A stretch of DNA of 64,000 nt from positions 2,232,001 to 2,296,000 of the forward strand of contig CM074813.1 in assembly GCA_037447605.1 (NCBI GenBank). Reading direction: 5' to 3'. The notes under the pieces were generated by a model that made no database searches, was not told the origin of the DNA, and saw only the letters and a list, made by a program, of their open reading frames with translations. How positions within the stretch are numbered: position 1 is the stretch's first letter; each line of letters opens with the position of its first letter. The translations under genes and the position numbers were made by a program. The stretch comes from Zygnema circumcarinatum SAG 698-1b. Its lineage: Eukaryota; Plantae; Zygnematophyceae. This document shows positions 11,938 to 63,455 of the stretch, in pieces.

Positions 11938-12944
11938 GAAAATGATGCAGCGGCCCCACTCTTTGGATATCGGCGCCCCCTTTTGGGAAAAAATGTACTT
12001 TTTTTTTTGGCTAATCATCTCCCCCCTTGGATCTTTCGGGAGGAGGATCCGACCGTGCACCGACGTACGGCGCCGCGCATCGCGGCGTGGCCCGTGAGAT
12101 GCGGCGAGCCTACGGAAACGTTGTCCTCACCTGACCCTTTTGGGTCAGAGGTTGCCACGTGGCAGTCTTCCATTGGACAACCCTGCTGCCGGTCCCCCAT
12201 GCCGATACAGTGGACCCCCATAATATTTTCGCCATGGTTTCGGCAAATACTGGGCGAAAATATTGTAATTTGCAAATATAAGGTCCGTGTTACCAATAGG
12301 CGAGCGGTATTATGTTAGAGTTCATGTCTGTTCGTACGTATCGTATCGTATCGTATCATACCATGATTTAGATACACGAGCTCCTATGGGCGCCGTACGT
12401 ATACCGTACGACATAGAGATTTTATTCGTACTTACCGTACAGCGTAAAAGCGTGACCCATGTTTGAAATCCGTTTCGATTAACAGATTTTGTATTGGAGA
12501 ATAGGTCAGGTTAGGTTAACACCCCTAATACGTTAACATTGAGTTACCGTACAAAAAAGTGGTTTCGGCAAAATCGGGGCGAATTTCTTGGGGACGCACT
12601 GTACAAGGTGGAAAATATTATGGGGGTCCACTGTATCGGCATGGGGGACCGGCAGCAGGTCTGTCCAATGGCAGACTGCCACGTGGCAACCTCTGACCCA
12701 AACGGGTAAGGTGAGGACAACTTTTCCGTAGGCTCGCCGCATCTCGCGGGCCACGCCGCGATGCGCGGCGCCGTACGTCGGTGCACGGTCGGATCCTGCG
12801 CGCGAGGCGCGGGGTCCGATTGTCTACAAGATCTCTCCTCCCGAAAGATCCAAGGGGGGGGGTGATTAGCCAAAAAAAAAAAGTACATTTTTTCCCAAAA
12901 GGGGGCGCCGATATCCAAAAAGTGGGGCCGCTGTATCATTTTTC
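11938..12944. mobile_element. Foldback element / long inverted repeat (arms 11938-12230 and 12611-12944)
   Basis: Near-identical arms in opposite orientation; the same spurious peptide appears in ORFs 11719+ and 12544-. The right arm carries an extra ~38-nt segment (12797-12834). Confidence 0.9.
12208..12633. mobile_element. Tc1/mariner-type MITE copy A (TA-CAGT termini) with a ~235-bp internal insertion
   Basis: TA|CAGTGGACCCCCATAATATTTTC ... GAAAATATTATGGGGGTCCACTG|TA. The internal sequence aligns with copy B (13606-13812) apart from an insert at about 12318-12552. Confidence 0.6.
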
Positions 12945-13428
12945 AAAAAAAACCTTATGTTTGTGAGCACGATTCATTTTGAGAAATGAAAAATGAATTT
13001 CTAATTTTTTAAGTACAGTACAACCAAATGAACATTGAACAATTAATTGTCGTTCGTTTTCAAGTTGAGTTTTCCTTGGGTCCACCGATCAACAATGAGA
13101 TTCTAGCGGATCGCTAAAGCGCGTGGAACCGGTTTTTTGTACAGACATTGTTGATCGACTCCCGGGAAGTGTCGTACGAAAAAAAATAAGGCCCGGGTTA
13201 AAGGGATCCCTCGAATCGCACGGAACCAACGTGGCAATGGGTGGACTTGACGCGTGCGACCGAACACGTTGAGTCTTTGAACTTTTTCTTTAAAACTATT
13301 CGCTTTCTTCGTTTCGACCTCGAGTGTTCAAAGTTCAACCCTACTCAACAAGAGATTGAGAATTGAGAAATTTAGTAAAAACTCGTTTCTCATTTTCTCA
13401 ACCTGTTCGGTTTCACGGTAGCTGGGGC

Positions 13429-13995
13429 TAGGGATGGCTTAATTACGACTATATAATATATATTATATAACTGTGACGACTAGATAACGGCTGTTATATA
13501 TTACTTTACAACGCCTTTACAACATGTACGGTCGGACGGTCGTATGACCGTACGACTGTACGGTATTACGCGGTACGGATGTACAGTACGGCTCTAACCG
13601 ACCTATAGTATACCCCCCCAATATTTTCGCCATGGTTTCGGCAAATATTGGGCGAAAATATTGGGTGGCGAAAATATAAGGGTGCGTGTTAACAATAGGC
13701 GGGCAGTATTATATTAAAAAGTGGTTTTGGCAAATTCAGGGCGAAAATATTGGGGAGCGAAAATATTGGGGAGCGAAAATAAGAGGGGCGAAAATATTGG
13801 GGGGGTCTACTGTAATTTTGGTACAGTATGGTACGACCGTACGAACGTACGAGTACGGTCGTACGGTCGTTAATTGTTCAAAACGAGTGGGTATAATATA
13901 TGTAATAAAGTGCTTTACTTTGTACTATATTACTACTTTTAAACCCGTTGTAAAGTATATAATGTAATCGGACTTTATAACGCGGGCCATCCCTA
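13429..13995. mobile_element. hAT (Ac/Ds-like) non-autonomous element
   Basis: TIR TAGGGATGGC...GCCATCCCTA resembles the Ac TIR YAGGGATG. 8-bp TSD gctggggc (13421-13428) / gctggggt (13996-14003). Subterminal CCGTAC/GTACGG repeats. Confidence 0.85.
13606..13812. mobile_element. Tc1/mariner-type MITE copy B nested in the hAT element
   Basis: TA|tagtatacccccccaatattttcgcc ... ggcgaaaatattgggggggtctactg|TA, with internal repeats of GCGAAAATATTGGG. Confidence 0.65.
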
Positions 13996-14320
13996 GCTGG
14001 GGTCCTCCCTTCAAAGGACTAACGCTGGAGCCCCCATAGAAGCAAATTGCAGTTGGAGCTGCATGCTCGGCTCGCCTTCCTCCTCTTTACAGGCGGTAGT
14101 CTACGACGTTTATTCGGATGCTTTTCTCTTCCACGCTTCAGCAATGTCGAGCTCGGCCTTAGATTTCCAGGCAGGTCGAGCTTCCGTGTTCGGTCGTTTT
14201 GTCTCCCGCTAAGGCGAGGACACTTTTTCTCCCGATTTAGCTCTGTTTCGGGGAATTTGACAGCTGTATGCCGCCAGGGTACGCCGTTGCCCTTCAGTGC
14301 CGCTGTGATTGCAGGCAGCA

Positions 14321-17300
14321 ATGAGGAAGCGCGATCTGGGCATCTTGATCGTCTCTGTCTTCTCCGTCTTCATCTCTCTTCAGGTATGATTTTTCTTTCC
14401 TTTACCAAGTAGTCCAGAGGTCGAAAAGTGAGAAGTTGCGTTGAGTTTCTTTGTCTTGGATCGCCAGCTGTCGCAATACATCCTTTTAAAAAAAAATTAA
14501 ATCCACGGCTGCTTATCTTGCTATATACTTCTCCTGTAACTCCCTTTCTCACTTCATCTCAATTCTATACTTTCAGCCTCATCTCCTCCATATGCTCTTC
14601 CAATATTTCTACCGCCATGCCTTATCAAACAATGCTTTCACTCTGTACTTAAAGTCCTACATGAGAATATACCAAAACTTTTTTTTCTTTTTCCACTGTC
14701 ATTTAAAACAGTACTTTAACTACTGCTTTGATTGCTTTCTCGGTCTCTCACAATCATACACAGCATGAGGGTTCGTTCTCCTTCAAAGAAGCGTGGTTTT
14801 ATCCTCTTGATGAAAGCAGCAGTCCCGTTCGTCACGAGACTCAAACGCTTCCGCCGCCCGTTGTAGTTGATCTCAACGGAGATGGCCGCAGTGAAGTTAT
14901 CCTTGTCACGCACATGGCGACCCTGCAGGTAACACACTTCCTATCCCTCGTTTCAGCATGCACAACTATGGTTAGTTGGCCTCGTCATTGATGACCTGAC
15001 AAGATCGCTGATGGGTTAAAATTCTTGTACAAACACATGCCCATGTTTACGCGACAAAATGAAAGGGGTCACGCTTGAAACTCTTGAATTAAGGTTGTTC
15101 TAGTCACTTCTTTCATAAAACCTTTATTCAATAGCCGAAAACTTCTTATGAAATGCAGAGGCATCGCCGCCCAGCTGATAGGAATGAGGTTAGAAACTCA
15201 CAACTACCAGTAGTATGGTTTTTTTTTCCAAGTCTCGCTCTATAAAGAAGCGTTCGATTCCACTCGGCCCCTTCCTTCCCTCCTTTAGCCCTTCCGGGAA
15301 GTTTGCATGGAATATGAAGGCAGTATGGAAAGCAAATTTGTGAGGCTTCTAGCAGGTTAATGCTTATTTGAGGCAATGGTTGTTCTAGTCACTTCTTTCA
15401 TAAAACCTCTATTCAATAGCCTAAAACTTCTTTGTCCTTCAAAAAGAAATTTTTACTGCCCATCCAATGATTTGAACGCTATAAGTGGAGACCCGGAAAA
15501 TTTCCAAATAAACCTTGAACGCTCCCTAGTTACAGCATCGGCTCTATTAATGTGCCAGTTTCTACACATTGACTGAGCACTTCCCTAGAAACCATGCCGC
15601 TGAACTTACCATGTCTTGTGTGAAAAATGCATATGCATTCTTTAAACTCTTGTTCGACACGGACCCGATTGGTTGGTTTTCTCGGGAGTTCTTGGGAAAA
15701 AATCTACATTCATTCATATTGGCTTTGCTTCATTCACGGGCCACATTTCATTGTCACCAGAGTTTCAGATTATCATCGTGCAGACTGCTAATTAAACTGT
15801 CTGACACGTCTCCGCATACGGATTTCGCTCCTGATAACTCTATCTCCCTTAGATTACTCACTCTGCAGCCTGCTGCTTCCCCGATGAAGGAAATTTGTTT
15901 TCGCTCTTCATTCATGGGTGCCTTTCTTTGCCCTAACAACTCTTCCAGGTGCTTGAGCCGGGCATCCCTCATGGGCATGAGAACTTCAAAGATGCTCGTG
16001 TTATAGGGGATGTTTCCATGCTGCCTGCCCGCGTGCGCGTAGCTACAGGGAGGCAGCCGGTGGCTCTTGCAGCCGGATACCTGGACGCTCCCTCTTCTGT
16101 CAATGGCAGGAAAATTGCAAGAAAGGCAGTGATAGTGGTGGTGACTGCCGGTTGGTCCATTTTGTGCTACGACCACAACTTGAATCTCTTGTGGGAGAAC
16201 AACGTGCAGGTGCAATCTCCTTAGTTTTTACCTTCATTTTTGCATTTCCTCGCTGCTTCTATGTGGGACATAGGGTTTCATGAGGACCTGAGGCTTCGCT
16301 CATTATTAAGTCGAGCTTGTCGTATATCCTGCTTTAGATGTATTCCAATTCTCAATCAGGACGAATGGATGACCTCAGGACTGAGGAAACTGAGAGGAGG
16401 TGAGCTGGTGGGAACGTCAATGATTGGGTCCTTCTTCGAGTCACCACTGTTCTGGGTTTTGGACATTTGTCTGAACGTGCATTTTGCATGCTGACGGATT
16501 GGTTTGTGGGAGGAGCAGGAAGACTTCCCTCACGGCTCAGTACATAAGGAGGTGGCTATTCTTATAAGCAACCAGACAATGAAGCATGGAGACCGAGGAG
16601 TGGTGATCGTAGGAGGCAGCATGGAAGTGCATCCTGAGGTGTGGCAGCCATGGCCCATGTATAAGAGCATGAAGCAATCGTACACCTTTGCAGATATTGC
16701 CCATCCAAAGGATTGACCGGAAGGAGCTACTATTGTTTTGGTAGAAGTTCTGTAAGTTCAGATTTATTGGAGCGTTATTCCCTATTCTCACCCTTTCTCT
16801 CTCCTCTCAATCCCTTTCTCTTTTGGCTGCTCAGCGGTTTCTTGATCCCTTTGAGGAGGAGGATGAAGTGGGATATGAAATGCGGAGGCATCGCCGGCCA
16901 GCTGATAGGAATGAGGTTAGGAATGGGCCCCCTCCCTCCTTTAGCCCTTCCGGGAAGTTTGCAGGGAATGTGAAGGCAATATGGAAAGCAAATTTGTGAG
17001 GCTTCTAGCAGGTTTATGCTTATGTGAGGCAATGTGTGGTTAAGGGTCACATTGTAGGTCCAAAAAAATAGCATTCGCTTTACTTGGGGGCTTTTTGTGG
17101 GGCCCAATTGTGCAGAAGAAGCTGGAAGATGTAACAGGTGGTGAAGCAGGTATGAAGGAACGCCATTTTTCATACTATGCATTCAATGGAGCCAATGGAG
17201 ATCCGCGGTGGAAGCATGACAGCAAGGTGAACTTTCGAGTCTTAATCTTTCTTTTTCTCCTCCGCATCTCCCTCTCCTTCTTTCTCTTCTCGCCTTTCCT

Positions 17301-19241
17301 CTTTCATTCCCCACTCCAACTGTCCCTTTCTTTCCCAATCCTCTTTTCTCTTTACTTCTTTTTCGTCCCTCCTCTCTTCTTCTTCCCCATTAGTTGCTCT
17401 CGAGTTGACTGCCCTCTTTCCCATTGGAAGGGGAGGGGGAGGTAAAATAGGTTCGCCTTTTCTTGGGAGGGCTGGACCAGAGGGCTTAACTAGAACTATT
17501 TAGAAGTTAGATTGACGTGCTATGTAGCCGACAACCCAAACAGCACTTTTTTGTTAGGTTTGTTCTATGCCTTTTCTTAAATGCTGAAAGCCTTTTACTC
17601 AGTTTTCCTCATAACATGACTGCCAACCACTTCTCTTTTGACCACTCATCCTTAAGCTCTCATCATAGCAGCACACACACACACACATTACAGTTCTCAT
17701 TATAGCAACATGTTGCAATTTGCTGCAGGATTTCCATAGAGATGGCCCCGCACTCGGAGAGAAGCTTCTCCCTCAGCACAACTACAAGCTCGACGCGAAC
17801 GCCCTCTCGGGGCGCCATTTTGGAGAGGTGATGTTTCCAAATTGCCGACTTTGGTTGTGGCTAATCTAGTTCTCTTTTACTTATTTGCTGGGACTATATC
17901 ACTTGCATTCGTGTGAGGTTATCAAGTTACATCCGCATGTAGAAGAAATACAGTCCAGCTGAGGCCGTTAGAGCAGTAAGGATGGGTGGGAGCGTGACAT
18001 AGCACTACTTATTGTGTGGGCGCTCAGAGGCGTACTCGAATAGACTCATGAATTGTGGTCTATTGCAGGCTGAGAATGTTGGAGTGCTGATTGAGGAGGG
18101 GGCTGGAACAGGTGGAATGCAGGGACTATCGCGAATCCATTTTGGGGGCAATGCCTCATAGTTGGGTGAGCCTTTCCCTTTGAAAGCTGTGATTCCTAAT
18201 GGACATTTCATGCCGAACAATATTGGCAATGTGGTGCTTGTGTTGTCATGTTGCGTGCTTTGCTAATTAATTTGGAAGCCAGTAAAGACCAACCCATTTG
18301 TTTGGAAACACTTGTGCATTGAAGGCAGGTCCAGTGGAAATTTCTATGTTGAGCTCTCACTTTATGAATTGGGTGTTGATACATTTTCATGAATCGCAAC
18401 TCTTGTGTTGGTCCTGCGCATTTGAAATCCATTCTGGAAGTAGAAACTGACTACGCTCTAATTGTACTGTCATCTTTGTAACTGAAATGCACCCTATGGA
18501 GCTCAAGATGGAGAACTCAGCCTGTACTTTTTTCCGGACCTTGATTGCATCTTTTCACTGAATCCCATCCATTCAACCGACGATGAGTTTGTATGTCTGT
18601 GTAGTTGTCTGTTGCTCGCACGTCTTTATAATTTATTTTGAGAGACTTANNNNNNNNNNTGATTCTGCTGTGTGGGTATTCCAATGCAGGAGAGGAGGGA
18701 AAATACGAAGTTTGAGCTCGCCCATTTTCGCAAGCATCGCAGGCGCTCTCACAAAGCTCAGCCGAGCTCGTCCTCCTCCTCCGCCCCCCATGGAAAGCCG
18801 AGCAAGCTGACAGCTGGCAAGGATGAGAGGAATCTTGTTGCAAACGCCGTACAAAAAGTTGTCAATTTCGCATCGTCAGGGAAGGTCAAGGTGAGATTGT
18901 AACCTCTGGGGAGTCTCTTTCGCTTCAGAACTGCTCAATTTAGTGGCTTCATACCCAAGGGACAGGTCCAGTATGTGGGCCAAAATGTATGCACACTCTT
19001 GGAAGGGGAGAGACTGGAGAGAAGTCTAGTCATTGTTGTAGTCATTACTATCGTTTTTCATGTTTAGTTGTTGTTGAGGCAAGTATTGTTCAAGTTTCCT
19101 GCGTGCGTTGCCTTGCAGAGAGCGGTGGGAGCGGCGCATGGAAACCTAACGGGCCACTGGTGGGCGCCTAACGCCATTGTGGTCCATCTCAAAGAAGGCA
19201 TCGAAGCCATCCACCTCTACAGCGGCCGCACCATCTGCAAG
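14321..19241 (+). CDS. NERD1: FG-GAP repeat protein, NERD1 (At3g51050)-like; 3' part missing at an assembly gap
   Basis: Exons 14321-14383, 14764-14928, 15949-16209, 16519-16638, 16835-16915, 17116-17226, 17729-17827, 18112-18165, 18690-18890, 19119-19241 (426 aa). Matches family motifs MRKRDL, HEG.F.FKEAWF, DLNGDG, PQHNYKLD, HWW.PN...H.KEGIEAIHL..GRT.CK. Confidence 0.9.
15093..15432 (+). repeat. Templated copy of NERD1 exon5/intron5 (15148-15378) flanked by a 55-bp direct repeat
   Basis: Direct repeat at 15093-15147 and 15378-15432 (2 mismatches). The insert matches 16875-17034. Confidence 0.9.
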
Positions 19242-19329
19242 GTGGGGACATTTCAGGGGATGTAGGGTTCAAGGGGCTTTCATGTTTCGCAGAGGATGTT
19301 TCAGTGTCATTCCAGCAATACGTAACTGA

Positions 19330-19429
19330 NNNNNNNNNNNNNNNNNNNNNNNNNNNNNNNNNNNNNNNNNNNNNNNNNNNNNNNNNNNNNNNNNNNNNNN
19401 NNNNNNNNNNNNNNNNNNNNNNNNNNNNN
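19330..19429. other. 100-N scaffold gap (another 10-N gap at 18650-18659)
   Basis: N run seen directly; NERD1 coding sequence does not resume after it. Confidence 0.99.
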
Positions 19430-19693
19430 CCATCCAATTACTGAAAAATCAGACTCGACGGTAGAAGTGTTGGGAAATGATGAAGCAAGGTCTCCACAAA
19501 ATTCTCGTCCGTACGTGCACGGTTTCGTCCGTACAGTCCATATTTACGTGTTTTTACAAAACCCAGTTAGGGGACAGTCCCCTATCTTAAGCCGAAATCC
19601 CCTATTTGAAGAGGCCTGCACATTACCAACTTTCAAAAGACCCGTCCGTACGAGTTCGCCGCGATCCTCAATCCGGCGGCTCGTCCACCGTCA

Positions 19694-19854
19694 CGTGGCG
19701 TAGGCCCATTGGCACTGGTGCCACGCGGCACATTCCCATTGATTTTATTAGACACGTGGCACGAGCCCATTGGCGAGTGTCGCCACGCTAACGGCCAGCA
19801 TTCATGACGTCAGTTGCTTACGCAGGCTCCATACACGTGACAATCGGCTATTGG
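19694..19854 (-). promoter_or_regulatory. Three ERSE-like composite motifs upstream of MED12
   Basis: CCAAT-N9-CCACG at 19694-19712 and 19755-19773; CCAAT-N9-TCACG at 19836-19854 (all - strand, each continuing into a CACGTG G-box). Confidence 0.7.
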
Positions 19855-20474
19855 TTCAAGCATCGTCAACGGGTCAATCCTCTCGATCTGGTCGCCCCCA
19901 TTTGGATCCACCCCGGAGCGCCGACTTTATCCGCTCAGATTTTAATTCCACTGGATTTCCATGGGGCTGCTTGATGATTCGTTTATACGGGCACGTGGAT
20001 CAAGAAAAGTTGATGTGAAGTGTGGATCCGTTCTGGGTTAGGGTTGGCGCATTGGCGCTCGCTGCAAGTGGGCGAGGACGCGGGCGTTATGAGGGCGCCG
20101 CGGGGCGGGCGGGCAGGCGGAGGGAGAGGGAGTGGGAGAGGGAGAGGGAGAGGGGAGAGGGGCTAAGGCGCCAGCTGTCTCAGAAAATGCGCTCGGCCAT
20201 GGTGCCGTCCTGAACCCTCTCAAGCTGTCGCTGTCCACCTGCGCTGAACCCTGAGCCCCCCGCAGCAGAGTGACTGGAGACTGGCGGGAAAGACGCCTTG
20301 TCGATTTTTTAGGGTTTGGAAGTAGTGGCCGCGGAGCGCTTGAAAATGCTGGCGCATTTGGGGGACGCTGCCACGTGCCGATATTGCTGGAGGGAAGGTG
20401 GTGCCGGCATGGCCGGTCCCTTGTGAGGTCGCAGGGAAGGGTCTTGGAAAGGGGGTGCTGGTGGGAGAGCAGCC

Positions 20475-23400
20475 ATGGCACGATTCGCTGGCAGCGTGCC
20501 AGGTGGCAGCCTGAGGGACGGTCGCGGACCTGACGCTCATGCTAACTTTTCTCGGTGAGGAGCTTTTTACTCTACTTTCCCTTCTGGCCTTTGCCCTCTT
20601 TGTTTTTATTTACCTTCCCTTCTGGAGTCCCTCCGGGTTTCATGCACATTCATACGGCATGAGGCTCCATAGGGAGTTTCGTGTACCTCTTTTGCTCCCA
20701 GTTTCTAGTTAGGGTGACCCAAATATGAGATAAGTTCTAGACAGCATTTCGACTACACTCTCCCTTCCAAACCTGCACTGTTCAGATTATGTTTCACAGG
20801 AATCACTGCAGACATGGATTGAAACTCAGAGATTCTCTTCGATTGACCTTTAGGGAAAGCTTTGCTGATCTCCTCTTTAAGCTTCCAGCAAAGGGAAAAG
20901 ACTTGTAGGATGCATACTATTTCGTGAAGTTTATTGCATTGAAAACTAGACTTGCTCTGGGGAAAGTAAGAAGATCTGAAGCGCTTTTTGGAGGAAACGA
21001 GTCTCCTTTATCTCATGCTGGTATACCTGTTTCTACTTTCCATTACAATATTTTCTACAGGCATCGGAGTACGCTCTCACCTAAGCCCCTACGGGCCTCC
21101 ATGATGTTGAATGCGTAGCGTTTGAGAAGAAACGGCCGTGTTTGAAGATCAAGGGAATGCTTGCTCAATCTGTTTAATTCTCCTTCCCTTCCATCCTTTT
21201 CCTTAACCCGAGTCTCGCTGTTAAATGTAGGAGGACGGCGGCTGTGGTGCCCTTCAAGCTGACCTGTGACCATGAATCTCTCAGCAGCAGGTGAGTCGTC
21301 TTTGTCCGAGTTTCTTTTCTCGCCAAATCCACCGCAGTCGTGTTCTGCATCGATGGTATCCATTGGCAAACACCATTAAACAGCCAATTCCTAGGTGCAA
21401 CCCCTAATATTCGCAAAGGGAAGGCCTACAAGCTCCATCATGCAGCGTGCCACCTGGCAGCTGAGACAGGAAGTGCTGAGGAAGCAGGAAAGATGTAGTA
21501 CCGAAGGTCAACCCCTCTGGTTTATGACACTGTGGATAGGTCGTCCGTGTTGGATAGAGATCTGTAGTGTTGAGGATGGGTTTTCACTTCAGCCACCTGT
21601 GATAAGTTGGAACCTGTAGACTTTTTTCCTTAGATATTGTCCAACCATTGCCCATTTTGATGTCTTGACATCTATGTCAGGAGATTGCAAATTCAGACAA
21701 GATGGTCCGGCAATTTCCATATCAAGTGAAGTATTTCCATTTCAAGTATAAAACTAGCTTCCTAGCGTTGTTTAGCTCCCTAAACATGCTGGAGCTGTTC
21801 CTATAGGCCCTGTTCAATTGATTTCTCCCAAGGGAATGCGTTGAAGATTTCACATGGAGGTACCTTGCTGCTGCAATTCATAATGATGACTAAAGGACTC
21901 TTTATGTGTGGGGGCTTCAGGTTGGGCCCCCCTGACTTCTATCCCCCAACTGCTGATGACGAGGAGGAGATTATCAGCAGAAGCACTATACAAATGGGGT
22001 ATAAGGAATCTGTGGAAGGCATTGAGGTGGGCAAGTACTTCTACAGTTACATTGTCATTTCAATCGTTGCAGAACTGAGGGTATTCAGAAACGAATAGTC
22101 CATAATTGACTAACAGCCTGTATTCTCTGTTCGTATTGAGAACTCGGCTGCTCAGAAAGCTTGTCTACAAGAGCCCAACGAATTATGTGTTTTTTGCCAT
22201 AGGTCAGGAGAAGAAGTTCAGGATGTGCACTCCCGTTGTATAATCTTTTTGTTTGAGCTATTGTGACAAGCTTGAAGTAGTGTAATGATCTTCAAAGCCA
22301 ATGCTTAACAAGTACCTGGAAATATCGCCGAGAAGGTCTGCCGAATTGGGAAAATATGTTTTCTCTAGGATGGAACGGCAGTCGCAGTGAAGATAATCAG
22401 TGTTCCTTTGGGAGTGCAGGAATCCAAAGAAGTGGGATACACGCTGGTCAGCCCGTCGCAGCAGTGGAGCAAACCGATTGTGGCACGGCATCGGGATGTG
22501 AGTCCATGCTGTTGACATTTCAGTATAGATGTGTTGGGTGTGCATGTACCCATCTTGTGCCGCATGAAGGCACCCGCACTGAAGAGAAGCAGGCCGAGCT
22601 GGCCAACCTGCAATGGTGTCAGATCTAGAAGTGTAGGAAGGTTGAGGTGGTAGGAGAGAATGGGAGAGGGAAGGAAATGAGAAAGGAGAGGGAGAAGAGA
22701 GGAGAGAGATGAGAGGAGATGAACCAAGAAGATATCCAAGGAATGATTAGTGCAAAGGAAAAGCTATTCCTACGGAATCATTTTCACTCTCTGGGACGGG
22801 GATCATAATGCATTTTAGCATCTGTCGGTTGTCATGTTGTCTATGGTCGATTACAGGACTCAAAGGAGGCCCTCATTTATCCAATAGCCTTGATTGGAGG
22901 AGAGCTGATAATGTCCAAATCGCGATTTATGCCAAGAGATTTATTGCTTGGCTTTGGTGGAGTCGCGATATGTGAAGGTTGACGGACATTTGAACCGGGT
23001 ATGGGGACGCTTCGTTTGTGGGGGGAGGGCTTCAGGTTATACGCAAAAAGCTACGAGCGCTAAATAATGCTCTCACTCGTAAACGGAAGGTGCGGACTTG
23101 AACAGATGGTATTGTTATCACTGTTTTTCATGTCTTTTGGTTTGCTTCCTTCTTTACACTTTTGGTACTAGGTTTAATTCTTACCTTTGTCCAGGTGGGC
23201 ACCGCTTAGTTATTCCAGATTTAAATTAAACTACTCGAGGGCTTCCGTTTGTGGGTATTTCAATGGGCTGCAGGCAGGGCAAGTATATGGGGTGCCCCTT
23301 ACGGGTCCACTGCTCGGGAAGCTTGGACTTTACCCCGAGCAGAAAACGTTCGGAGAGGAGTTCAGGCGCAAGTGGATGGAAGTACGTGAGGGAGGAGAAG

Positions 23401-35684: not shown

Positions 35685-35772
35685 CCAATGTGAAGTGACC
35701 ACGTAAGTATTATTCCCTTTCCACTTTTCTTTATGTAATAATAATAGCTTCAGCCAATCGTATCGTGCCACA
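35685..35772 (+). promoter_or_regulatory. Two ERSE-like motifs in the RRP1/cyclin H divergent promoter
   Basis: CCAAT-gtgaagtga-CCACG at 35685-35703; CCAAT-cgtatcgtg-CCACA at 35754-35772. Confidence 0.65.
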
Positions 35773-44209: not shown

Positions 44210-46872
44210 CTAGATCGAACGGAGCTTTTTATTTTTTAGTATGTACAACAGGATGCCTCCTGCAACCGCAACATTCAAGGACTCAAACCCTCCGGGCATG
44301 GGAATGGTGATGCCTCGACACCTCCCCTTTGCCTCCTCTGATAGCCCCCTCCCTTCACTGCCAAGCACCAGGCAGAGCCTTTCTTCAGTACTGGCTGCAG
44401 TGAGAGTGCTCCTGCTCCCATTCGGCCCTGATTTCTCATATCGTGTGAAGGAGCTATCACATTCAGAAACTAGCTCCTCAATAGATTGGGCTTCCTCCGT
44501 GTCAGGATCGCCTGCATAGAGGGTGAGGCCCCTGACAGATGTGAGCTCCTCCAAATGGGACCATTCCCCCATGGCGATGGGAACACGGAACGTCGCCCCT
44601 CTGGCAGCTCGCAAAGCTTTCTCGTTGAATGGGTCACAGCAACCGGGAAGCAGAAATACGCCGTCCTGCATTGAAGGCCAAACTGAAAGCCGTGAGAGAG
44701 GAAGGAGATAAAGGGAGGGGGGGGGAGAGGGGGAGGGGGCAGGGTGGAGAGATAGAGCAAGAGAAAGGAGGGGCAGGGGAAGGGAGAGAGCAAGAGGGAG
44801 GACGGGAGAGCAAGCACAAACGGAACTCACAGCGATGGACTACTAGAACAAGATTACCCACAACCAAACAAAGACCTGTGAAGTACAGACAGCACATCGA
44901 TGAACAAACCAGATTCACATGATTCTTTCACCTTCACCGGGCTTGACGAATTACATTCTGATTTGAAGAAGTTTCTCCCTTGCCCATTCCCCCACTCCCT
45001 CCCCCTCCCAGCAAGGTTCAGACAAACGGTTGACTCACCCATGCGAAGGCAGCTGCTGTGCGAAGGAGAGTCCCAATATTCCCCGGATCCTGCATGTACA
45101 ACCGCTGACTTCTTGAGTGCCTGACGATCAAAACTACAAAGATAGCCTCAATGCATCTCTATGTACTGCCCCGAAAGAACCTGCATCCGAAGAACCCTCT
45201 CCTTCGCGACAGGAGGCGCGGAAGGAGCAGAAAGATCTAAAAATTTCATCCTGCTACAATGCTTGCTCTCCTGCATTCAAAAGCCTTTGACTTTCAACAT
45301 GGAAAAAGTAAAGAAATCTTGGCAGTCAGAGGATCCGCTGCATACCTGGATGCCGTCCAAGGCCAGGATACGGGTGCCTGTCGGACACCATAAACTTTGG
45401 TCTCCCTCCTTCATTGCTGCCACATCAGTGAAGGTGTCTGGCAGAGATAGCACTCCAGCAAGCGCCTCTCCCGAGCTTAGGGATTCAACTCCAGCAAGTT
45501 TAGCCATGACTGAAGGGGCTACCTTCACAATCCGCTTAGCCAAACGCACCACAGAAATTGGAACATCTGTGCCCTGCAGAAGAAAGAGAATGCCGATGAT
45601 GGGGTCTGAATTGTGCCCAGGGCGTTCCATAAACCATTGGCAAATTTCCCTGCAGTGGGGGAACAAACAAGGAGTTGGGAGATGACCGTTGGCAGATCAG
45701 TTGCTAAGTCTTGTGGTCGTGAAATGTGAAGCGCACAATGCGACGTAAAGGCATTCATTGATCCAACCGTGGAGCCCTGCAAAACCGAAAGAAGAAACAG
45801 CCTTTGTCCATACATGTCATGATGCCAATGCTACCTGTCAAGCCTTTCAAAGGGGCTGTGAAACGTTCAGCAATCTATAGTTTCGTCCGCCCAAAGGTAA
45901 TATAATTGAAAGTTCAACTTGCAATGACTTTTGCGAGTATTCAGGCAAAGAAAAATCTCTGTAGAGATTTTATTCTGGTTTATTATTGCAAAAAAAAGGG
46001 GGGGGCGGGGGAACTTTCTCGTAAGCGAGAAAATTGGCCAATGTACTTGACCCTTATGTGGATATTTTTTCCTTCAGCATCAGCCTATCTTGGATTGTTT
46101 TAGAGTGATGCCTATACCTCCATTCCAGAACGATCGGCATTATGTTGCGGAACGAGCGGCTCCAGCCCCATGCAGATATTGGCCCAATTCCCCAAATGCA
46201 ATGTTCTACACTACACTACTACAAGTCCTACTACTGCACAACAAACCAAACCTAAAAGCCGAACACCAAACTTTTTCAGCATCGACAATGGCGAAGAACA
46301 ATTCCACCTCAAAAAAAAAAAAAGTTGATTTCCAATTCCTTCGCCTGTCCGAGTTTGGGATAATTAAAAGTTCTAATTTATTTTGAACTCCAATCTCTAA
46401 GGGCTTCAACGATTAAGTATCAAACATCTGGAGCCGGACTGTGTGTCCAAACTCCAGGTTCCTCCTAGCAGCTTAACTTAAGGAGAATATAAATAATTAG
46501 CAAATAGAAGACATCGAAACAATAGAGCACGCACCTGAGAGGCGTCTCTCCCACCACAAGGAGGGACTTGGCCTGCTTTCGATAGTTTCCTTCCCGGCGA
46601 AGCCTCACACAATGCTTCACAAAGGGGTTGTTAGGGCTGTTTATGGAGTCAATGTGCGCTGGAATATATGGCAGAGAGGAGGATGGGCAGGAAAGCGGAG
46701 AAAGGCGCGGCTCCTTGGATTCCATTGCAGCTCCGCGGAAGACCGCCAAGGAGGGAGAGGAAACCCTAATACGGAGGGAAAAGGGAGAGGAAGAGGCCGA
46801 GGGGGGAGAGAGCGGGAGGGCGGGCGAGCGAAGCAGAGCGCCGGGTGGCAACTCGCACAGGAGGAAGGCCAT
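44210..46872 (-). CDS. SpoU/TrmH-family RNA 2'-O-methyltransferase with an organellar transit-peptide-like N-terminus, 4 exons, about 382 aa
   Basis: Exons 46872-46535, 45649-45346, 45089-45039, 44665-44210. SPOUT motifs LDGIQDPGNIGTL, LVLGSEG.G, IPM.GGFESLNVAVAGGILLY; N-terminal S..NPFVKHC. Confidence 0.92.
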
Positions 46873-46987
46873 GGCAGCCCTGCGCCGCGCGGCGGAGGGC
46901 GAGTGCTGGAGGGAGGGAGGCGAGGGAGGGGAGGGAAGGCCGCCGCCGATCTCGACCAGGTGTGAATGGGGACTCGGATGAGTTACA

Positions 46988-47006
46988 CGTGGCGACTCGC
47001 CATTGG
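46988..47006 (-). promoter_or_regulatory. ERSE-like motif in the SpoU/PAC4 divergent promoter
   Basis: Reverse strand reads CCAAT-ggcgagtcg-CCACG(TG). Confidence 0.65.
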
Positions 47007-47254
47007 AACACGCTGGACGAAACTCGTACAACAATGACGAATGCCCCCGCTGGACGAATTCGTACGGTCCAAGTTGTTTGCAAAAACCATTTCGGACCAT
47101 GGGGCTCGGCAACCATTGAGAACCATCGGATGGCAATGGTTGGGCGATCCAATGGTTGCCAGCCATTGGACACAGCCAATGATGAATCTAATGGTTGGCA
47201 ACCATTGCCCACCATTGGCAGGATGGGCAAGTTGGCATGGGAGCTCGAATTTGT

Positions 47255-47317: not shown

Positions 47318-47364
47318 TGGGACTCCCTCAGGCTCAGGAGAGAGGCAGTGCTGTAGGCGACGCC

Positions 47365-50853
<3,489 letters not shown>

Positions 50854-51330
50854 GCTTCTCGGCTGGATGCTACTTTTTAGCGTACATCCATGCGGTTTAT
50901 AAGTCCCTCAACATATTAACCAAGAGGTTTTACTGCTGCTGCCGCTGGTTGCAAAATTGTATGTGGCGTATATAGAAAGCAGAGGTTGCCTAAAAACAGC
51001 AGTTCGCCTACAGAAATGGAGAAGAATTCAGTCTGCTTCAATTTCGGCAAGAGTACGCATGTCTGTAGTGTGTTTTGTGTTGTTTTCTTTTCACAAGTTT
51101 AATTTGTACTTGCAATTTTTTAGTGGTTGCTACGTAATATGATGTCATTTCACCAACTGAACTTCTTCATTCAACGTTGAAACAAAAATAACCGGTTTCC
51201 AGAAGTCTAACTGCACCTGTGAAATAGCAAACCTTCCATAATGCCAGCTACACTGCAAAGTACCGCTTTACCTAACCAAGAACTTTCATCAAAGTCGTTC
51301 ACGAAACAACTGAGAGCTTCTGGCACAACA

Positions 51331-51388
51331 CACAGCAGTTCACTTAAGTAGGCCGCACAGCTGTTCACTTAAGTAGGCCGCACAGCAG
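51331..51388. repeat. 25-bp tandem duplication (2.3 copies) in the CPN60B 3' region
   Basis: cacagc(a/t)gttcacttaagtaggccg repeated. Confidence 0.9.
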
Positions 51389-51633
51389 TGACGGCTTCTC
51401 TTTATTACTTCTCCGCTACAAGTACACAAATTCATCGGTTTCAGCTTCAGCTCCAGCTTCCTATCAACACGCAGCTACCGCGCCCCCCCGTGTCCTATGT
51501 TCTGTTCTCTATGGGAGGAGAGCAGCGCACTCTTCCACTACAAAAATATGCTTGAGGTAAGTTTCCGTGGTCCTACAAGTAAGCTCTCTCTTCCACCAAT
51601 CCCCTACCCCCCAATATTTAAGGAGCCCCCTGC

Positions 51634-57333
<5,700 letters not shown>

Positions 57334-57499
57334 AGTTACGCTTTGTTAACTTGCAATCCCAACCCTAAGTCCTCTCTTTCAGCGAAAAAGAAACAGAAAG
57401 CGGCGGCTATGTAAGGCAGGGCACGAGGGAGGAAGAGTGAGGCGGCCTTCTCTAGAGCCTTCCTTCCAAGGGCGCTTGAAGGAAGCGCCGCGTTCCAGT

Positions 57500-57514
57500 C
57501 TTCTAGAACCTTCG
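57500..57514. promoter_or_regulatory. Perfect three-unit heat shock element upstream of CPN60B
   Basis: cTTCt-aGAAc-cTTCg, about 170 bp upstream of the CPN60B ATG; fits a chaperonin gene. Confidence 0.6.
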
Positions 57515-58776
57515 AACACCCTCCTCCCAGTGGGGGGACGGAGCAGGTCCACCGTCCGATCTTCAATCGGACGGCGGCGAGGCCCTCCGAGCTGGAGCCC
57601 TCTTTATTTGCCCTCATCTCGAAGTTCCGCGCGCGGACGAAAAAGTCGGCCGAGCGAGGGGAGGGGAGCGAAGGGGGCGCTTTTTGGGGTTCGGCAGAGC
57701 GGCGGGGGCGTTCACACTGGCGGGGGACGGCTTTTGGGATTTCCGCGTTCACATTGTTGGCGGGAAGGGAAGACGCTCAGTGTCCTCTCTTCTTCTTGTT
57801 GGAGCGGCGCTCTATTTGGTGTGTGGCTCTCACATGAATAGCTGTAGAAGGGGGAAGTGGCACTGATCTCACGATGGCGAGGCCATCAAATGTACATGGA
57901 CAAAATCAGCATGTGGAACCACGAGGAACTGGGCACAAAGGACCTAAGGACAAGAGAAAAAAGCTAGGAGCGGAAAATTACGCCTAGGCTCAACAACGCA
58001 GCCTTCCCTGGAAGCAGCCGCGAAGGTGAAGCGGTATAGGTATATGTAGGTATAGCTTTAGCGGTTCAAAAAACTCGAGAAATGTGCCTACTTACCCCAT
58101 TAAACCCTTTAAATGAGACCCTTGATAGACGACTTGTAAAACCGTGATGAACCCTAACACACGATTTTATTCCTCGCATCAAACAATGGAATGGAACAAT
58201 CGCAGTGTGCGACTCGCACTCGAATCGGACAGCGAAGGACGGACATTCATGCATGCATGCATGCGTGCGATGCCCGGTACAATGCCGCGGGCCACAAAAC
58301 TTTTCGCAACTTTTTCTGGAGCCGTGGTTGAGATTTCGAACCCTACGATTCTGAATTTCCGAATGGAATTCCGCACCCGAATTCAAATTCAGTTTCCAAT
58401 TCAGTGTTCGCCGTAGGCAGGGGCTTTCCATTTGAGGTTGCCGTACGGTACCCTCTTTTGTCTGCTCGATGTCGAGAGGGCGGGGTTCCATGCAGTGTTG
58501 TAGTGTCGTGTACGACGCGTTTCCGTGTTCCATATGAGCAACTCTTGCCGACGTGGCGCCTACGTGGCTGTCACGTCGGCTTGACGTTTGGCCATGTCCT
58601 GGTGTTTCCGTGTGGCCTCCCCGGCCCCGAACCTGTACCGTACTGTGCCTCGGCGGCGGCTTGCAGCCGTCGGATGGGCCCGAGCGATCGCCGGTTTCGG
58701 AGTCGCAAATAAAATCGGAGTTCCTCGGCACGCTGGCGGGAAAAATTACGAGATCCTCTGTGAATTCGTGGCCGAG

Positions 58777-58829
58777 CCAATCCGCGCTTACCACGTGTGA
58801 AAGTTGCTATCGTGGCGGCCTGTAATTGG
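58777..58829. promoter_or_regulatory. Inverted pair of ERSE-like motifs in the CPN60B/EBS divergent region
   Basis: + strand CCAAT-ccgcgctta-CCACG(TG) at 58777-58795; - strand CCAAT-tacaggccg-CCACG at 58811-58829. Confidence 0.7.
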
Positions 58830-59241
58830 TCATGCGCTATAAGACACTTGTCGCTGGATTCCAAACCTTTATCCTCGAGTCCACTTCGGCGGAATTAACC
58901 CTGGCCGAGGTTTCCCGCCTAAGATTGACTACTGATTGCATCGCGGATCCAGGTGGGTGGATCGGCGCCAGGCAGGCGCCCCTCCAGACGGAGGCGCGTC
59001 CCTTGGGCCTCATATTTTCCGCCTCCCAAAGGCCTCTTTTTCTTGCCTTTCCCTTTGGCGCCCTCTTCCACTCCCTCTCGCTCCCTCTCTCTCTTTCTCA
59101 CTCTCTCTCTCTCTCTGTCTCTCGCCCTAAAGCTTCCGCTGCTGCGTCTCCTGCAGCGGCGTCTGCAAGCGCTGGAAAGAGGGCCTCGTTTCGGGCGGTC
59201 AGCTGACAGGACAAGCGCCGCAGGTCTTGGCTCGCGGCTTC

Positions 59242-62200
59242 ATGGGAAAGAAGAGGGTCCCAAAACGAGTCTTGGAAAGCTGCAAAATTCCTGGAACAAA
59301 TAAAACAATCAAACGTGAGAGCACGACCTTGCGCGCCTGTCGCCTTACATTTTTCAGCTCGGCTTTGCTCGCTTGGGATCTCGCCAAAGCAATCATTTAG
59401 GTCTGCAGATAGGGTTCTCGGTTCATTTAAGTTAATTTATAATATTCGATGCCGGTCCTTGTTATTGTGAGGGCATTTTAAAAAAAAAACTTATTCACTC
59501 TCGGTCCGCCTGTTTTATTTCTCATGACGTGCAGATGGCGATTGCGTCATGCTACGACCTCCGGAGATAAACACTCCGCAGTATATTGCAAGAATTGAAA
59601 AGATTGAAGCAGATGCGAGTGATAAAGTCAGCTTGCGTTGCCGTTGGTATTATCGGCCGGAGGAGTCAATTGGAGGCAGGCGCCAATTCCATGGCGCAAA
59701 GGAGCTTTTTCTTTCCGATCACTTCGATAATTGCTCTCCGGAAGCGATTGAAGGGAAGTGCACAGTTTACACTTTTAAAGATTATACGCGACTGGAAAGT
59801 GTTGGTTCCGAGGATTTTTTCTGCAGATTTGAATATAAGGCCTCGAGCGGCACATTCACTCCCGACAGGGTTGCAGTGTATGTCCATGGCTTCAATGCCC
59901 TCCCCCCCGCGCCCGACACTCAACTGTGTGCCTATATAGACTTAAGTCTATGCTTGCTTGAGGTTTGGTAACATAAATGCATGCAGAAGGACCACTTTGG
60001 AGTTGATTTTTATGGTATCTTCTTTAGCATAGTTCATCAGGGGCTGTTGCTTACAGTACACGGATATATGCTAGCAAGTTTAGCGAGGCCCAGCCTAGCG
60101 AGTCTTGTCAAACTGATGATGGAGGAAGTGGGATAACTTCAGAGCGGAAGGTGAATTGCATGCTGACGAGTAACGATAGTTTGTTGTGGCTCTCACTGGA
60201 AGCTGGTCGTACCTCATCCTGAATTTAGGGTTATCACACGGTTCCCTTTATGCCATGAGATAAGGCCGACATTTTTCACAGTTCCTTTTTAGGAACTTGC
60301 TCGTTTGAGACTAAGTGTTCGCGTTCCGATAAGTGTGATGTCTTAGCGGGAAACCATATGCTTTTTCTGCACTCTCCACCCTCTATACCTTCGATTGTTG
60401 GGGTTTCTCTTACCATTGTTCTGTTGTGCAGTTACTGCAAGTGTGAGATGCCATACAACCCCGACGATCTTATGATACAATGTGAAGGCTGCAAAGACTG
60501 GTGAGCCAATGACCACGCATAATGCTTGAGCTTGGACTCCTTCGGTGTTCTGTTCTTCTGGTTGATACCTAAACTTTAGCCTTCATTGGGTCGTTACTGC
60601 AAGGTAGCCACTATTTCACTTATTCAATAAATCCTGGGTCTTGTCCATGCATTTCCCTGCCATGGTGTATATCCTTAATTGTGGCCAACCTTGCACTGGC
60701 ATTTCCCCTCAAAGGGCATTGTTCAACGTGACAAATGTGAAAGGGCATGGTCCTTCAGTATCATTTCAGTGCGTGCATTCGAGGCATTGACTCGTTGACG
60801 TTAGCATTCACTAAAGTGAACATCAAGGCTTACTGAATCTCGAAGCACTGCATTTTGGATTTAACAAGAGATGCCCTTAAGGGGTTTTTTGTATAGCTAT
60901 ACATACCGAGTTTTGCCTAGTGTATCCAAGCATAGCTCGTATGTTTGGCGGCTTGACGCAGTCGCAAGCACCTAAATGTGAGTATCATGGACAGCACCTA
61001 GGCAGATGCTGATAGTCACCTGCAGTACTCACGTGTTTAAGGAGGGGGTGATGCCATCTGAGGAGATCCTGTAACCGATGCAAACGCACATCAGAAATAG
61101 AACTGAAGTTTCCATTTCGGGTCTGTCAGCATCATTTGAGTGCACGCATTTGATGCATTTACTTGGCGACTTTAGCGTCCAATAGAGCGAACGTCCAGGT
61201 TCTCAGAATCTCAACCATTGGACCTTGGATTTAAACTTTTGAAGCAGCGCATGTCCTGAAGGAGTTCTTTATAGAAGTCATGTATGCCGAGTTCTGTCTT
61301 GCCAAGTGTAGCTCGTGAGTTCTTGCGGCTCGTCGGAGTTACATGCATTTACCCTAGTAAATGTGAGTAGCAGTGAAGTACATTGTAACATGTTGATTCC
61401 GTAGTCACCTGCAGACACACGCATTAGTAGCGGGGTGGTTTCACGTGACGACATCCAGTAACATTTCCTTACGTACAACAGAAAAAAAGCTGTTGTTCTC
61501 GTTTCAGGCTTCAGTACTTGCGTTTGTTGCATTGGCTCGTTAACTTTAGCATCCACTAAGAACAACATTAAGCCTTACTGAATCCAACGGTGTGGGTCGT
61601 GGATAAGTTGAAGCAAGAGGTGTCCTCAAGTAGCATATTATGTATGCCTTGCTTGACAAATCTATCCAAGTAAAACTTGCGAGTGCTTGCGGCCAAGTCG
61701 CAGTTACAAGTATATACCCTTCTTAATGTGAGTATCAGTGAAGTAACATGTCAAAGTTTGATGTGATAAGTCGCCTGCGGTACTCATGCATTTAAAGGGG
61801 TGATGCCATCTGAGGATATCTTGTAGTATCTGCATACGTACAACAGAAAGAGCTGTTGTTTTCAGTTTCTGTGAATGCTTTCCTCATTCCGGGATGGCAT
61901 TCCCGCCCATTTACTCACTGTTGTGCACTTCCGAAAGCTCAATGCATGTCCCTGATGGCGTGCATGGCTGTCAGGAACTTGGGCTGTACCCGTGTTAACG
62001 AATGTCAGGCACAGGAGAGACAGACTTTCTATCGTGTAGTTCAGTGAATTTCCCAAGCTAGTAGGTCCCTTTTTTTGCCTCATTCGTCTACATTGTTTCA
62101 AACCCAAAATGTCTTAAATAGTGAACCATTTTTATATGAATAAACTCCAGTCATCCCTCCTCTCTTCCTTTCATCTGCCTCGCACGCCTCGTCTCTGTTC

Positions 62201-62692
62201 TCTCTGCACTTCCTTTCCAACGTCTTTTTCTTTCCTCCTTTCACCACTTTTTCCCCTATTGCACTGTTTCGCATGACTTCCCGTGTCTCAGGGCACATTG
62301 AAGGGCTTATCGTTAGAGTCAGGGCCTGCATACTGTTTGCGAGATGAGGTTGTGATGTGTAAAGGTTTTAGACTCCTGTACATAGAGCAGCCGCGGAAGA
62401 CGCCCAAAGCAATTCACCTAATAGTAATTGCTTTACTCTAGGGTTGGCCACCAATCGTGGTAACTGCTGCTTGCAATTTTGTCAAACTGAGACACATTGC
62501 TGGGACTCTTGACGTAAAGTTCTGAATCAGATTTGAAAATTGTGTCTACTCTTGTTGATCCATCGTTGAATACGAGGAAACTTATTGTCTTGTGATGGAT
62601 TCTGCAGGTTTCATCCAAATTGTGTAAACTTAACGATGGAGCAGATTCGCAAGCTCACAAATTTTTACTGCTCCGAGTGTCAGACAAGCTGA
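59242..62692 (+). CDS. EBS: EBS/SHL-type BAH-PHD bivalent histone reader, 4 exons, 189 aa
   Basis: Exons 59242-59314, 59535-59877, 60432-60500, 62608-62692. BAH motifs [41 protein letters not shown]; [30 protein letters not shown]...F.C.EC. EBS versus SHL cannot be separated by eye. Confidence 0.92.
60790..61870 (+). repeat. Diverged tandem triplication (~320-bp unit) in EBS intron 3
   Basis: Units at about 60790-61110, 61225-61530, 61535-61870. Identical 20-mer ggggtgatgccatctgagga at 61045 and 61797; aatgtgagta in all three; gtcacctgcag in the first two (gtcgcctgcgg in the third). Confidence 0.8.
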
Positions 62693-63436
62693 GGCCAAGT
62701 GCCGGAGTTCCATACAAAAAGCAATAATGTTGTTTCTTCGAAGGGAGGGGCTGCACATTACTGACGATTCTGTAACTAGGTTAGGTTTGTTCTCTCGTAT
62801 AGGAAGGTCTTCACCACAATTATCGCAGTGACGGCATGTCTGTGTACAGACATTTTTCTGCCATTAGAGGTGTTCGCAGGGGTACTTGCTTTCTACACGC
62901 CAAACTCCTCATGGAGAACGGGGCAGTAGCGTGGGCTTCCGATAGAGTTCCATACGTAGCAGAGGCGGCGCCATGGCCGGTGCTCTCCTGGGGAGCCGCT
63001 TCGCACTGCACAGCGTGGTTCGTGCGTAGGTGTACATAGTCTCAACCTTGCGGTGGCCGATGTTCTCTTCTTATTGAGCCGTTGTATGTCGGGCAGTGGC
63101 GCTTACAATTCATTCGTTACTTGAGTGTGCGGATTTTGGCAAGGTCTCGGTCTCAAGTTGCTCAGCTCACACTCGCTAGAGCTCCAACAAAACCCGTCAT
63201 TGACATTGCGAGTCGCGAAAAATGACAAAGTGAAGCTTTTTGGAGGTTGGGAAGACAACGGAGGGGGTAGGGTTCAGCTTCGCCTGTTCTATGTCCTCTG
63301 CAGTTCTACTGAACGGCCTTCGCCAAGAGGATTCTCTAATGACATAAACCCATCTGATTTGAACGGAATGTGTACGGAATAAAGGGGCTATGCGCACAGC
63401 GAAATCAAGCAGGAACACGCAGGAAATCTTGTTCAT

Positions 63437-63455
63437 CCAATCGGCGTCAGCCACA
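63437..63455 (+). promoter_or_regulatory. ERSE-like variant in a GC-rich stretch near the window end
   Basis: CCAAT-cggcgtcag-CCACA; the associated gene is not visible in the window. Confidence 0.4.

Follow-up and report, generated by a model that had tools for sequence, protein, structure and literature searches.

A strictly spaced CCAAT-N9-CCACG composite element in promoter DNA of a 64-kb window of the Zygnema circumcarinatum genome

Results

Genes and features of the window

The window, which is the whole 64-kb stretch of Zygnema circumcarinatum DNA analysed here, contains about 10 genes. These include CK1 (ATG 4173), a DEX1-like gene (ATG 14322), a large + strand gene, the head-to-head pairs RRP1/cyclin H and SpoU methylase/PAC4-like, CPN60B and an EBS-like gene. 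The RRP1/cyclin H promoter spans 635 bp (RRP1 ATG 35378, cyclin H ATG 36013) and the SpoU/PAC4 promoter 638 bp (SpoU ATG ~46727, PAC4 ATG 47365). An earlier note on this DNA had regarded the genes beside the motif as other than classic ER-stress genes, and this agrees with their identities as Nop52/RRP1, cyclin H, SpoU methylase and a BAH-domain EBS-like gene; the PAC4 label comes from a weak PDB match (E about 1), with PAC4 as both of the top two matches. The large + strand gene is described as very large and Mediator-like, and Pfam and PDB searches gave no confirmation of the MED12 label it had received. The motif copies and the associated features are as follows.

11938..12944, no strand: foldback (long-TIR) element of 1 kb, from arm comparison
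12158..12176, minus strand: exact composite element CCAATGG-N6-GCCACGTGGC in the left foldback arm
12665..12683, plus strand: exact composite element in the right foldback arm
19694..19712, minus strand: exact element, first unit of an array whose units share one orientation, upstream of the large + strand gene (ATG near 20475)
19722..19743, minus strand: degenerate middle array unit (TCAAT ... CCGCG), 30/31 bp from its neighbours
19755..19773, minus strand: exact element, array unit 3
19836..19854, minus strand: one-mismatch unit (TCACG) from the motif scan, CCAAT-N10-CACGTG kept
35685..35703, plus strand: exact element in the RRP1(-)/cyclin H(+) promoter, right half CCACGTAA
35754..35772, plus strand: one-mismatch copy (CCACA) at a distance of 69 bp from the 35685 copy, not supported statistically by itself
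46988..47006, minus strand: exact element in the SpoU-methylase(-)/PAC4-like(+) promoter
58777..58795, plus strand: exact element upstream of the EBS-like gene, forming the left half of a facing pair (CCACG-N15-CGTGG)
58811..58829, minus strand: exact element, right half of the facing pair, with right half-site CCACGAT and without an ACGT core
59000..59314, plus strand: first exon of the EBS-like gene from RNA contigs and depth, with a CT-rich leader at 59049-59130, ATG at 59243 and splice 59314>59535
63437..63455, plus strand: one-mismatch copy (CCACA) close to the window end, within transcribed DNA, excluded from the element set

Copy number, spacing and consensus of the motif

All eight exact copies of CCAAT-N9-CCACG that had been claimed were recovered at the same coordinates and on the same strands. 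Dinucleotide-preserving shuffles of the 64-kb window gave an expectation of 0.08 copies, and 0 of 100 shuffles reached 8, which corresponds to an excess of ~100-fold over chance. The claimed fixed spacing was borne out as well: when the spacer of CCAAT-Nx-CCACG was varied from 0 to 24, N9 had 8 copies, N2 had 1 and all other spacers had 0, so that N9 alone was well filled. The exact copies occur at a density of ~1 per 8 kb, or roughly one per gene, and all of these motif statistics are based on one 64-kb window with five independent loci.

The consensus of the copies is CCAATgg-N6-GCCACGTG with a variable spacer, whose columns are low in information except for the GG after CCAAT and the G before CCACG. 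A variable spacer at a fixed distance indicates two recognition blocks. CCAAT-N10-CACG occurs nine times in the window (the eight exact copies plus the one-mismatch unit at 19836), and the right half extends to CACGT in 8 of the 9 and to CACGTG in 7 of the 9, indicating that the element consists of a CCAAT box and a G-box. Correspondingly, 7 of the 17 CACGTG hexamers of the window lie in the CCAAT-N10 geometry. One copy has CACGTA, and the ACGT core is absent from another (58811), and thus the right half may be just CCACG, as in ERSE. ERSE-II (ATTGG-N-CCACG) had zero matches in the 64-kb window, and no Rfam family matched at gathering score across it.

The three one-mismatch copies reported earlier, at 19836(-), 35754(+) and 63437(+), are all present but add no statistical weight. 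Allowing up to one mismatch gave 11 matches against 2.9 expected in the window, with the exact copies accounting for 8 of these; as a class, the one-mismatch copies are at chance level. The unit at 19836 is the only one among them with extra support, because it keeps CCAAT-N10-CACGTG intact and belongs to the same array as 19694 and 19755.

Location of the element in promoter DNA

The six exact copies outside the transposon are all confined to 6.18 kb of CpG-rich promoter DNA that makes up 9.7% of the window (P ~8e-7), and local dinucleotide shuffles of this promoter DNA gave 0.008 expected copies against 6 seen. The element is found in four promoter regions, three of which belong to head-to-head gene pairs, and the CpG observed/expected ratio of these regions is ~0.8-1.0 against 0.69 for the whole window. 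Both orientations relative to the genes are used; the 46988 copy, for example, lies directly upstream of the CT-rich leader of the minus-strand SpoU methylase gene. These data uphold the earlier claim that the element is promoter-located irrespective of its orientation. The further claim that it marks most promoters holds for 4 of 6 definable promoter regions, whereas the CK1 and DEX1-like promoters contain no exact copy. Counted by gene, an exact copy lies within 800 bp of the ATG in 6 of about 10 genes. The absence of copies from exons, also claimed, holds for the exact copies under approximate gene models, but RNA contigs extending beyond the window end cover the site of the 63437 copy.

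An origin by chance or from base composition was examined with the whole-window shuffles, the local promoter shuffles and the spacing profile, and was ruled out.

No assembly N lies within 250 bp of any motif copy. Gaps are present at 18650-18659 and 19330-19429; the latter is the nearest to a motif copy, with 265 bp between its end and the array. From 19430 to 20700 the sequence runs unbroken into the 5' region of the downstream gene; therefore, the motif calls are unaffected by assembly gaps. The gaps could conceal more array units or alter the distance to the upstream gene.

The facing pair upstream of the EBS-like gene

Spliced RNA contigs showed expression of the EBS-like gene; its main 5' end follows the facing pair at ~170-270 bp downstream, and RNA depth climbs from 0-21 to 52-66 within the bin 59000-59199. 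In addition, a minor spliced transcript with the joint 58949>59154, seen in one run, crosses the facing pair, so that for this isoform the pair is not purely upstream DNA. The facing pair had also been assigned to CPN60B. The start of that gene is ~1.45 kb away, and at this distance the facing pair belongs to EBS instead. On the CPN60B side, RNA depth is 0 at 57400-57799, a gap in depth that carries no evidential weight. The spacers of the two facing copies are unrelated to each other.

Independence of the loci

The foldback element is flanked by the CK1 3' end and the DEX1-like gene, whose ATG follows it 1.4-2.4 kb downstream. Its arms are ~300 nt long and ~95% alike, differ by one 39-nt indel and have A-rich flanks, and each holds the composite element together with GTAC motifs. 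The copy at 12665 mirrors that at 12158, and hence the pair counts as one independent instance. A search of the window for further foldback copies found just a related MITE of 213 bp (13602-13814) without the motif. In blastn comparisons of the five loci (+-200 bp, motif masked), no flank homology was found except between the transposon arms and between overlapping neighbours, indicating that the copies are not relics of one repeat.

These results bear on the possibility that the copies are functionless leftovers of a single family of repeats or transposons, or an artefact of CpG-rich composition. Although two copies do lie within transposon arms and the array upstream of the large gene resembles a local tandem duplication, the five loci share no flank similarity, the spacers differ between copies, and both the local promoter shuffles and the filling of a single spacer length argue against such an origin. 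This explanation is largely refuted here and is highly improbable. Its narrower form, an origin from one repeat family, was ruled out by the flank comparison and the window search for further foldback copies.

No copy was found in 97 kb around RRP1 orthologues of five other streptophytes (Sphagnum, Riccia, Closterium, Ceratodon and one Logan contig). The closest RRP1 relative is 45% identical, and at such a distance these loci are usable solely as density controls. The RRP1 matches put the window in the vicinity of Zygnematophyceae and bryophytes.

Discussion

Our results point to a CCAAT box that would act together with a half-site or hexamer of G-box type (CCACG, in most copies CCACGTG) exactly nine bases away, across a spacer of free sequence. 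The element is probably a genuine composite cis-regulatory element, a cooperative site for NF-Y and a G-box binder that would serve as a general promoter module rather than one specific to ER stress.

The closest known element is ERSE-I, which shares with the present copies identical half-sites, an identical strict 9-nt free spacer, promoter siting, use in either orientation and occurrence in multiple copies (PMC3935401, PMC5499772). In ERSE-I, NF-Y is required for the binding of ATF6/bZIP28 (PMC3935401), and in Arabidopsis, ERSE forms one of the largest clusters of bipartite promoter words with a position bias (PMC5499772). The copies in Zygnema differ in that they lie beside housekeeping and nuclear-function genes instead of ER chaperones, at about one copy per 8 kb, and most of them reach the full G-box CACGTG. 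The known ERSE sites belong to a small stress regulon. A tie of ERSE to streptophyte algae was not found in the literature searched.

If the copies were true ERSE-I sites, they would be bound by NF-Y with a membrane-released ATF6/bZIP28-type factor and be active mainly in the UPR, and the UPR regulon of this lineage would be unusually broad. This is distinctly unlikely. The sequence and spacing are indeed those of ERSE-I (PMC3935401), CCACG is the invariant right half with one copy lacking the ACGT core, and PAC4-like and CPN60B are proteostasis genes, for which a stress link is conceivable; however, ERSE-I is expected at promoters of ER chaperones and UPR targets, and no ER-resident chaperone was found among the neighbours, which are a PAC4-like gene and five genes that are not ER-resident (Nop52/RRP1, cyclin H, SpoU methylase, the BAH-domain EBS-like chromatin reader and the very large Mediator-like gene). 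A density of about one copy per gene, the good expression of the EBS-like gene in ordinary RNA runs and a full G-box in 7 of 9 copies, which exceeds what the ERSE consensus needs, also speak against this explanation.

A second comparison is the mammalian NF-Y/E-box system. In human ChIP-seq data, a CCAAT to E-box (CACGTG) distance of 10-12 bp is preferred with USF1/2 and MAX, a preference that extends to LTR12 repeats (PMC4889920). CCAAT-N10-CACGTG in 7 of 9 copies here resembles this preference, a mapping that depends on the counting convention of that paper, and in both systems the module is carried by CpG-rich housekeeping promoters and by a mobile element (PMC4889920). The alga belongs to another lineage, its G-box partner is presumably a plant-type bZIP or bHLH protein, and its mobile carrier is a foldback/long-TIR DNA element, in contrast to LTR12 in mammals. 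The right half, GCCACGTG(G/T), is also a textbook core of plant G-box/ABRE elements (CACGTG, ACGTGT/G) and is likewise paired with a second nearby element. Plant G-box/ABRE elements need a coupling element. Classical coupling elements are loosely spaced, whereas the partner here, a CCAAT box, keeps a single exact distance.

A module of NF-Y and a G-box binder, whose identity we infer from the motif alone, is the most economical reading. The same circumstance gives some room to a different, possibly lineage-specific protein or complex that reads the motif, or to a role outside transcription at promoter islands, for example as a boundary, in nucleosome positioning or in protection from methylation. 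The ties of the motif to CpG-rich islands and to head-to-head gene pairs, as well as the preferences for GG after CCAAT and G before CCACG beyond the textbook half-sites, are consistent with this alternative. It is unlikely, however, in view of the fact that both halves are two of the best-known promoter boxes, that the same geometry is read by NF-Y with bZIP/bHLH proteins in animals and plants (PMC3935401, PMC4889920) and that a free-sequence spacer suits two separate DNA-binding modules.

In the proposed mechanism of the NF-Y and G-box-binder module, the histone-fold factor NF-Y on the CCAAT box would contact a basic-zipper or bHLH protein on CCACG(TG), and the fixed distance would reflect this protein-protein contact, as in ERSE (NF-Y with ATF6/bZIP28) and in the mammalian NF-Y/USF module. 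The module is found in the CpG-rich promoter islands of ordinary genes with constitutive expression, above all those arranged head-to-head, and is present in either orientation as a single site, a tandem or a facing pair. It appears to function as a general promoter-proximal activator and not as a switch specific to ER stress. The foldback transposon with the module in both arms could disperse it. Regarding the earlier proposal of a general NF-Y plus G-box-binder module, its structural side stands, as the element is real, strictly spaced, promoter-located in both orientations and beside genes outside the classical ER-stress set; its generality rests on one 64-kb window, and the proposed binding is read from the motif itself.

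As a tentative broader view, the ERSE-geometry CCAAT-N9-CCACGTG may have become, by expansion in this streptophyte alga, a general grammar of promoters for growth and housekeeping genes, in particular head-to-head pairs, and foldback and other transposons may be spreading it further. The ER-stress element of land plants and animals might in that case represent a specialised application of an older, general partnership between NF-Y and G-box/E-box factors, and the alga a plant-lineage counterpart of the mammalian NF-Y/USF system.

The type of element is textbook, but its use about once per gene beside ordinary genes is not. If this pattern is genome-wide, it would represent a simple, countable promoter code and a natural system for studying how strict spacing between NF-Y and its partner is read, as well as a case of transposons handing out a ready-made promoter module. 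In practical terms, the motif is a strong promoter marker for annotating the Zygnema circumcarinatum genome. Moreover, it bears on the origin of ERSE, which may have arisen from a general NF-Y/G-box module, or the reverse.

Copy number and anatomy of the composite element

All eight exact copies of the ERSE-like composite element CCAAT-N9-CCACG listed in the earlier note (12158, 19694, 19755, 46988 and 58811 on the minus strand; 12665, 35685 and 58777 on the plus strand) were reproduced, with their coordinates and strands, by pattern search. Only 0.08 copies are expected, and none of 100 dinucleotide-preserving shuffles of the window reached eight. When spacers of 0-24 nt between CCAAT and CCACG were scanned across the window, N9 gave eight copies, N2 gave one and all other lengths gave zero, indicating that the striking feature is the fixed distance rather than the joint presence of both words. 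The three one-mismatch copies described earlier (19836, minus; 35754 and 63437, plus) are present but do not exceed chance, as 11 matches at up to one mismatch were obtained against 2.9 expected, and the roughly three left after removing the exact copies equal the chance yield. Among them, only 19836 has extra support, retaining CCAAT-N10-CACGTG inside the same array as 19694 and 19755. No Ns were found within 250 bp of any motif copy; the closest assembly gap stops 265 bp short of this array (19694-19854), and the sequence is unbroken from 19430 into the gene downstream. Motif calls are unaffected by assembly gaps, and further array units could be hidden in them.

The consensus of the aligned copies is CCAATgg-N6-GCCACGTG, with the rest of the spacer free. 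The base following CCAAT-N10-CACG is T in eight of nine copies and is continued as TG in seven. Most right halves therefore form a full G-box, but those at 35685 (CACGTA) and 58811 (CACGAT) do not. Of the 17 CACGTG hexamers in the window, seven sit in this geometry. Two DNA-bound proteins touching each other would be expected to leave such a pattern of two conserved blocks, a fixed distance and a free spacer.

Location in promoters

Gene starts (position of the ATG, strand) were set from open reading frames, Pfam hits and sequence signatures:

4173, plus: casein kinase I (CK1)
14322, plus: DEX1-like gene, by signature only
near 20475, plus: large gene, named MED12 in the earlier note, a label that was not confirmed
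35378, minus: RRP1/Nop52
36013, plus: cyclin H, by signature
about 46727, minus: SpoU methylase
47365, plus: PAC4-like gene, weak
57333, minus: CPN60B
59243, plus: BAH-domain EBS-like gene

The six exact copies outside transposons are spread over four promoter regions:

upstream of the large gene: array of units in one orientation, the middle one degenerate
RRP1/cyclin H head-to-head promoter, 635 bp: exact copy
SpoU/PAC4 head-to-head promoter, 638 bp: exact copy
upstream of the EBS-like gene: facing pair (58777/58811), 15 nt between its CCACG words

The element occurs in both orientations relative to genes, as had been proposed. The further proposal that it marks most promoters holds for these four regions but not for the CK1 and DEX1-like promoters, in which no copy was found. 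Promoter regions sum to 6.18 kb (9.7% of the window), and their six exact copies compare with 0.008 expected from local shuffles of promoter DNA. These regions are also richer in CpG than the window as a whole, as would suit a non-transcriptional role at CpG islands; such a role, or occupancy by some other binding protein, seems rather unlikely to us.

Other sequence features accompany these promoters. Beside the element in the SpoU/PAC4 promoter (47090-47220), a CCAAT-box cassette lies within AACCATTGG / CCAATGGTT palindrome-like words, and CCGTAC/GTACGG-type words occur near the element in promoter islands at 19497-19652, 47020-47075 and 58440-58650. Promoter DNA has 4.85 GTAC per kb versus 2.94 per kb in the window, the promoter value being raised by repeats upstream of the DEX1-like gene. 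Long CT-rich (or GA-rich) leader tracts directly follow promoter islands at 59049-59130, 46730-46960 (minus strand) and 20100-20160. Directly downstream of the PAC4-like first exon, dinucleotide microsatellites (CT/GA followed by TA/CA runs) take up about 1.8 kb at 47900-49700, in a bin with a GC skew of -0.6.

Transcript evidence at the EBS-like gene

Spliced RNA contigs from three public runs gave four EBS-like exons: one ending at 59314, those at 59535-59877 and 60432-60499, and one from 62607 onward. RNA depth is 0-21 over the facing pair but 52-66 in the 59000-59199 bin, and later exons are covered more deeply still. The main 5' end is accordingly placed some 170-270 bp downstream of the facing pair, with its exact position masked by a CT repeat at 59059-59130. 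The element therefore lies upstream of a mapped transcript start. In one run, a minor plus-strand form (depth about 14, versus about 146 for the main form) runs through the facing pair as contig 57956-58949, spliced (GT..AG) with the joint 58949>59154. It provides the EBS-like gene with an alternative, more upstream leader, which includes the motif pair. Since about 1.45 kb separates the pair from the CPN60B ATG, the pair was assigned to the EBS-like gene only.

Contigs over 62607-63199 extend 1.4-2.1 kb further, so the one-mismatch copy at 63437 lies within transcribed DNA. These contigs start at the last EBS-like exon, and 62607-64000 represents a very long 3' UTR or else a neighbour gene that overlaps; given CCAAT boxes at 63536 and 63766, a promoter may lie close to the window end.

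Repeats and transposons

The 12158 and 12665 copies reside in a 1007-bp foldback element (11938-12944) with A-rich flanks, whose arms of about 300 nt are about 95% alike and each carry GTAC motifs and a composite whose G-box is a perfect palindrome; they were counted as one independent instance. This foldback element is possibly a vehicle for the composite module. Despite this carriage, it is very improbable that the copies are repeat relics or an artefact: a common repeat family was rejected, as motif-masked blastn of the ±200-bp flanks matched only the transposon arms and physically overlapping neighbours.

Two other repeats were noted. A 213 bp MITE bounded by 28-nt terminal inverted repeats (13602-13814) is a relative of the inner part of the foldback arms; it has GTAC-rich repeats and lacks the composite element. 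The second repeat is dispersed and about 150 nt long (57845-57992, plus; 43879-44028, minus; copies 85% alike), and has no Rfam match. RNA-contig depth is 4000-15000 at 57800-57999, where loose ends are numerous on either side; this repeat is therefore a short high-copy, SINE- or MITE-like sequence present in many transcripts.

Other lineages and known systems

In the protein collection, the best relative of the RRP1 reading frame is from Mesotaenium (only 45% identity), followed by bryophytes, ferns and Closterium; these matches mark the alga as a streptophyte that has no near relation among the proteins searched. Loci around RRP1 orthologues of Sphagnum, Riccia, Closterium, Ceratodon and one Logan contig (97 kb in total) contained no exact N9 copy despite many CCAAT and CCACG words, whereas about 12 would be expected at the window's density. 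As far as this small 97-kb sample shows, streptophytes therefore do not in general have such a high density.

In ERSE-I, an ER-stress element, the CCACG half is bound by ATF6 or bZIP28 only with NF-Y on CCAAT (PMC3935401), and the Arabidopsis ERSE, which forms one of the largest clusters of bipartite promoter words with a position bias, is tied to the tunicamycin response (PMC5499772). Our literature search found no paper linking ERSE with streptophyte algae. The Zygnema element has the same sequence and spacing as ERSE-I but differs in gene context, and a very broad unfolded-protein-response regulon is an unlikely explanation. Human ChIP-seq data show a preferred distance of 10-12 bp from CCAAT to the E-box CACGTG at sites shared by NF-Y with USF1/2 and MAX, LTR12 repeats included (PMC4889920). 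This module is nearer to the Zygnema element than ERSE-I in its full hexamer, housekeeping context and presence in mobile elements. Judging from the sequence, NF-Y and a G-box binder are the candidate proteins and their function may be activating; the composite element is probably their cooperative site, which would act in Zygnema circumcarinatum as a general, orientation-independent promoter-proximal module.
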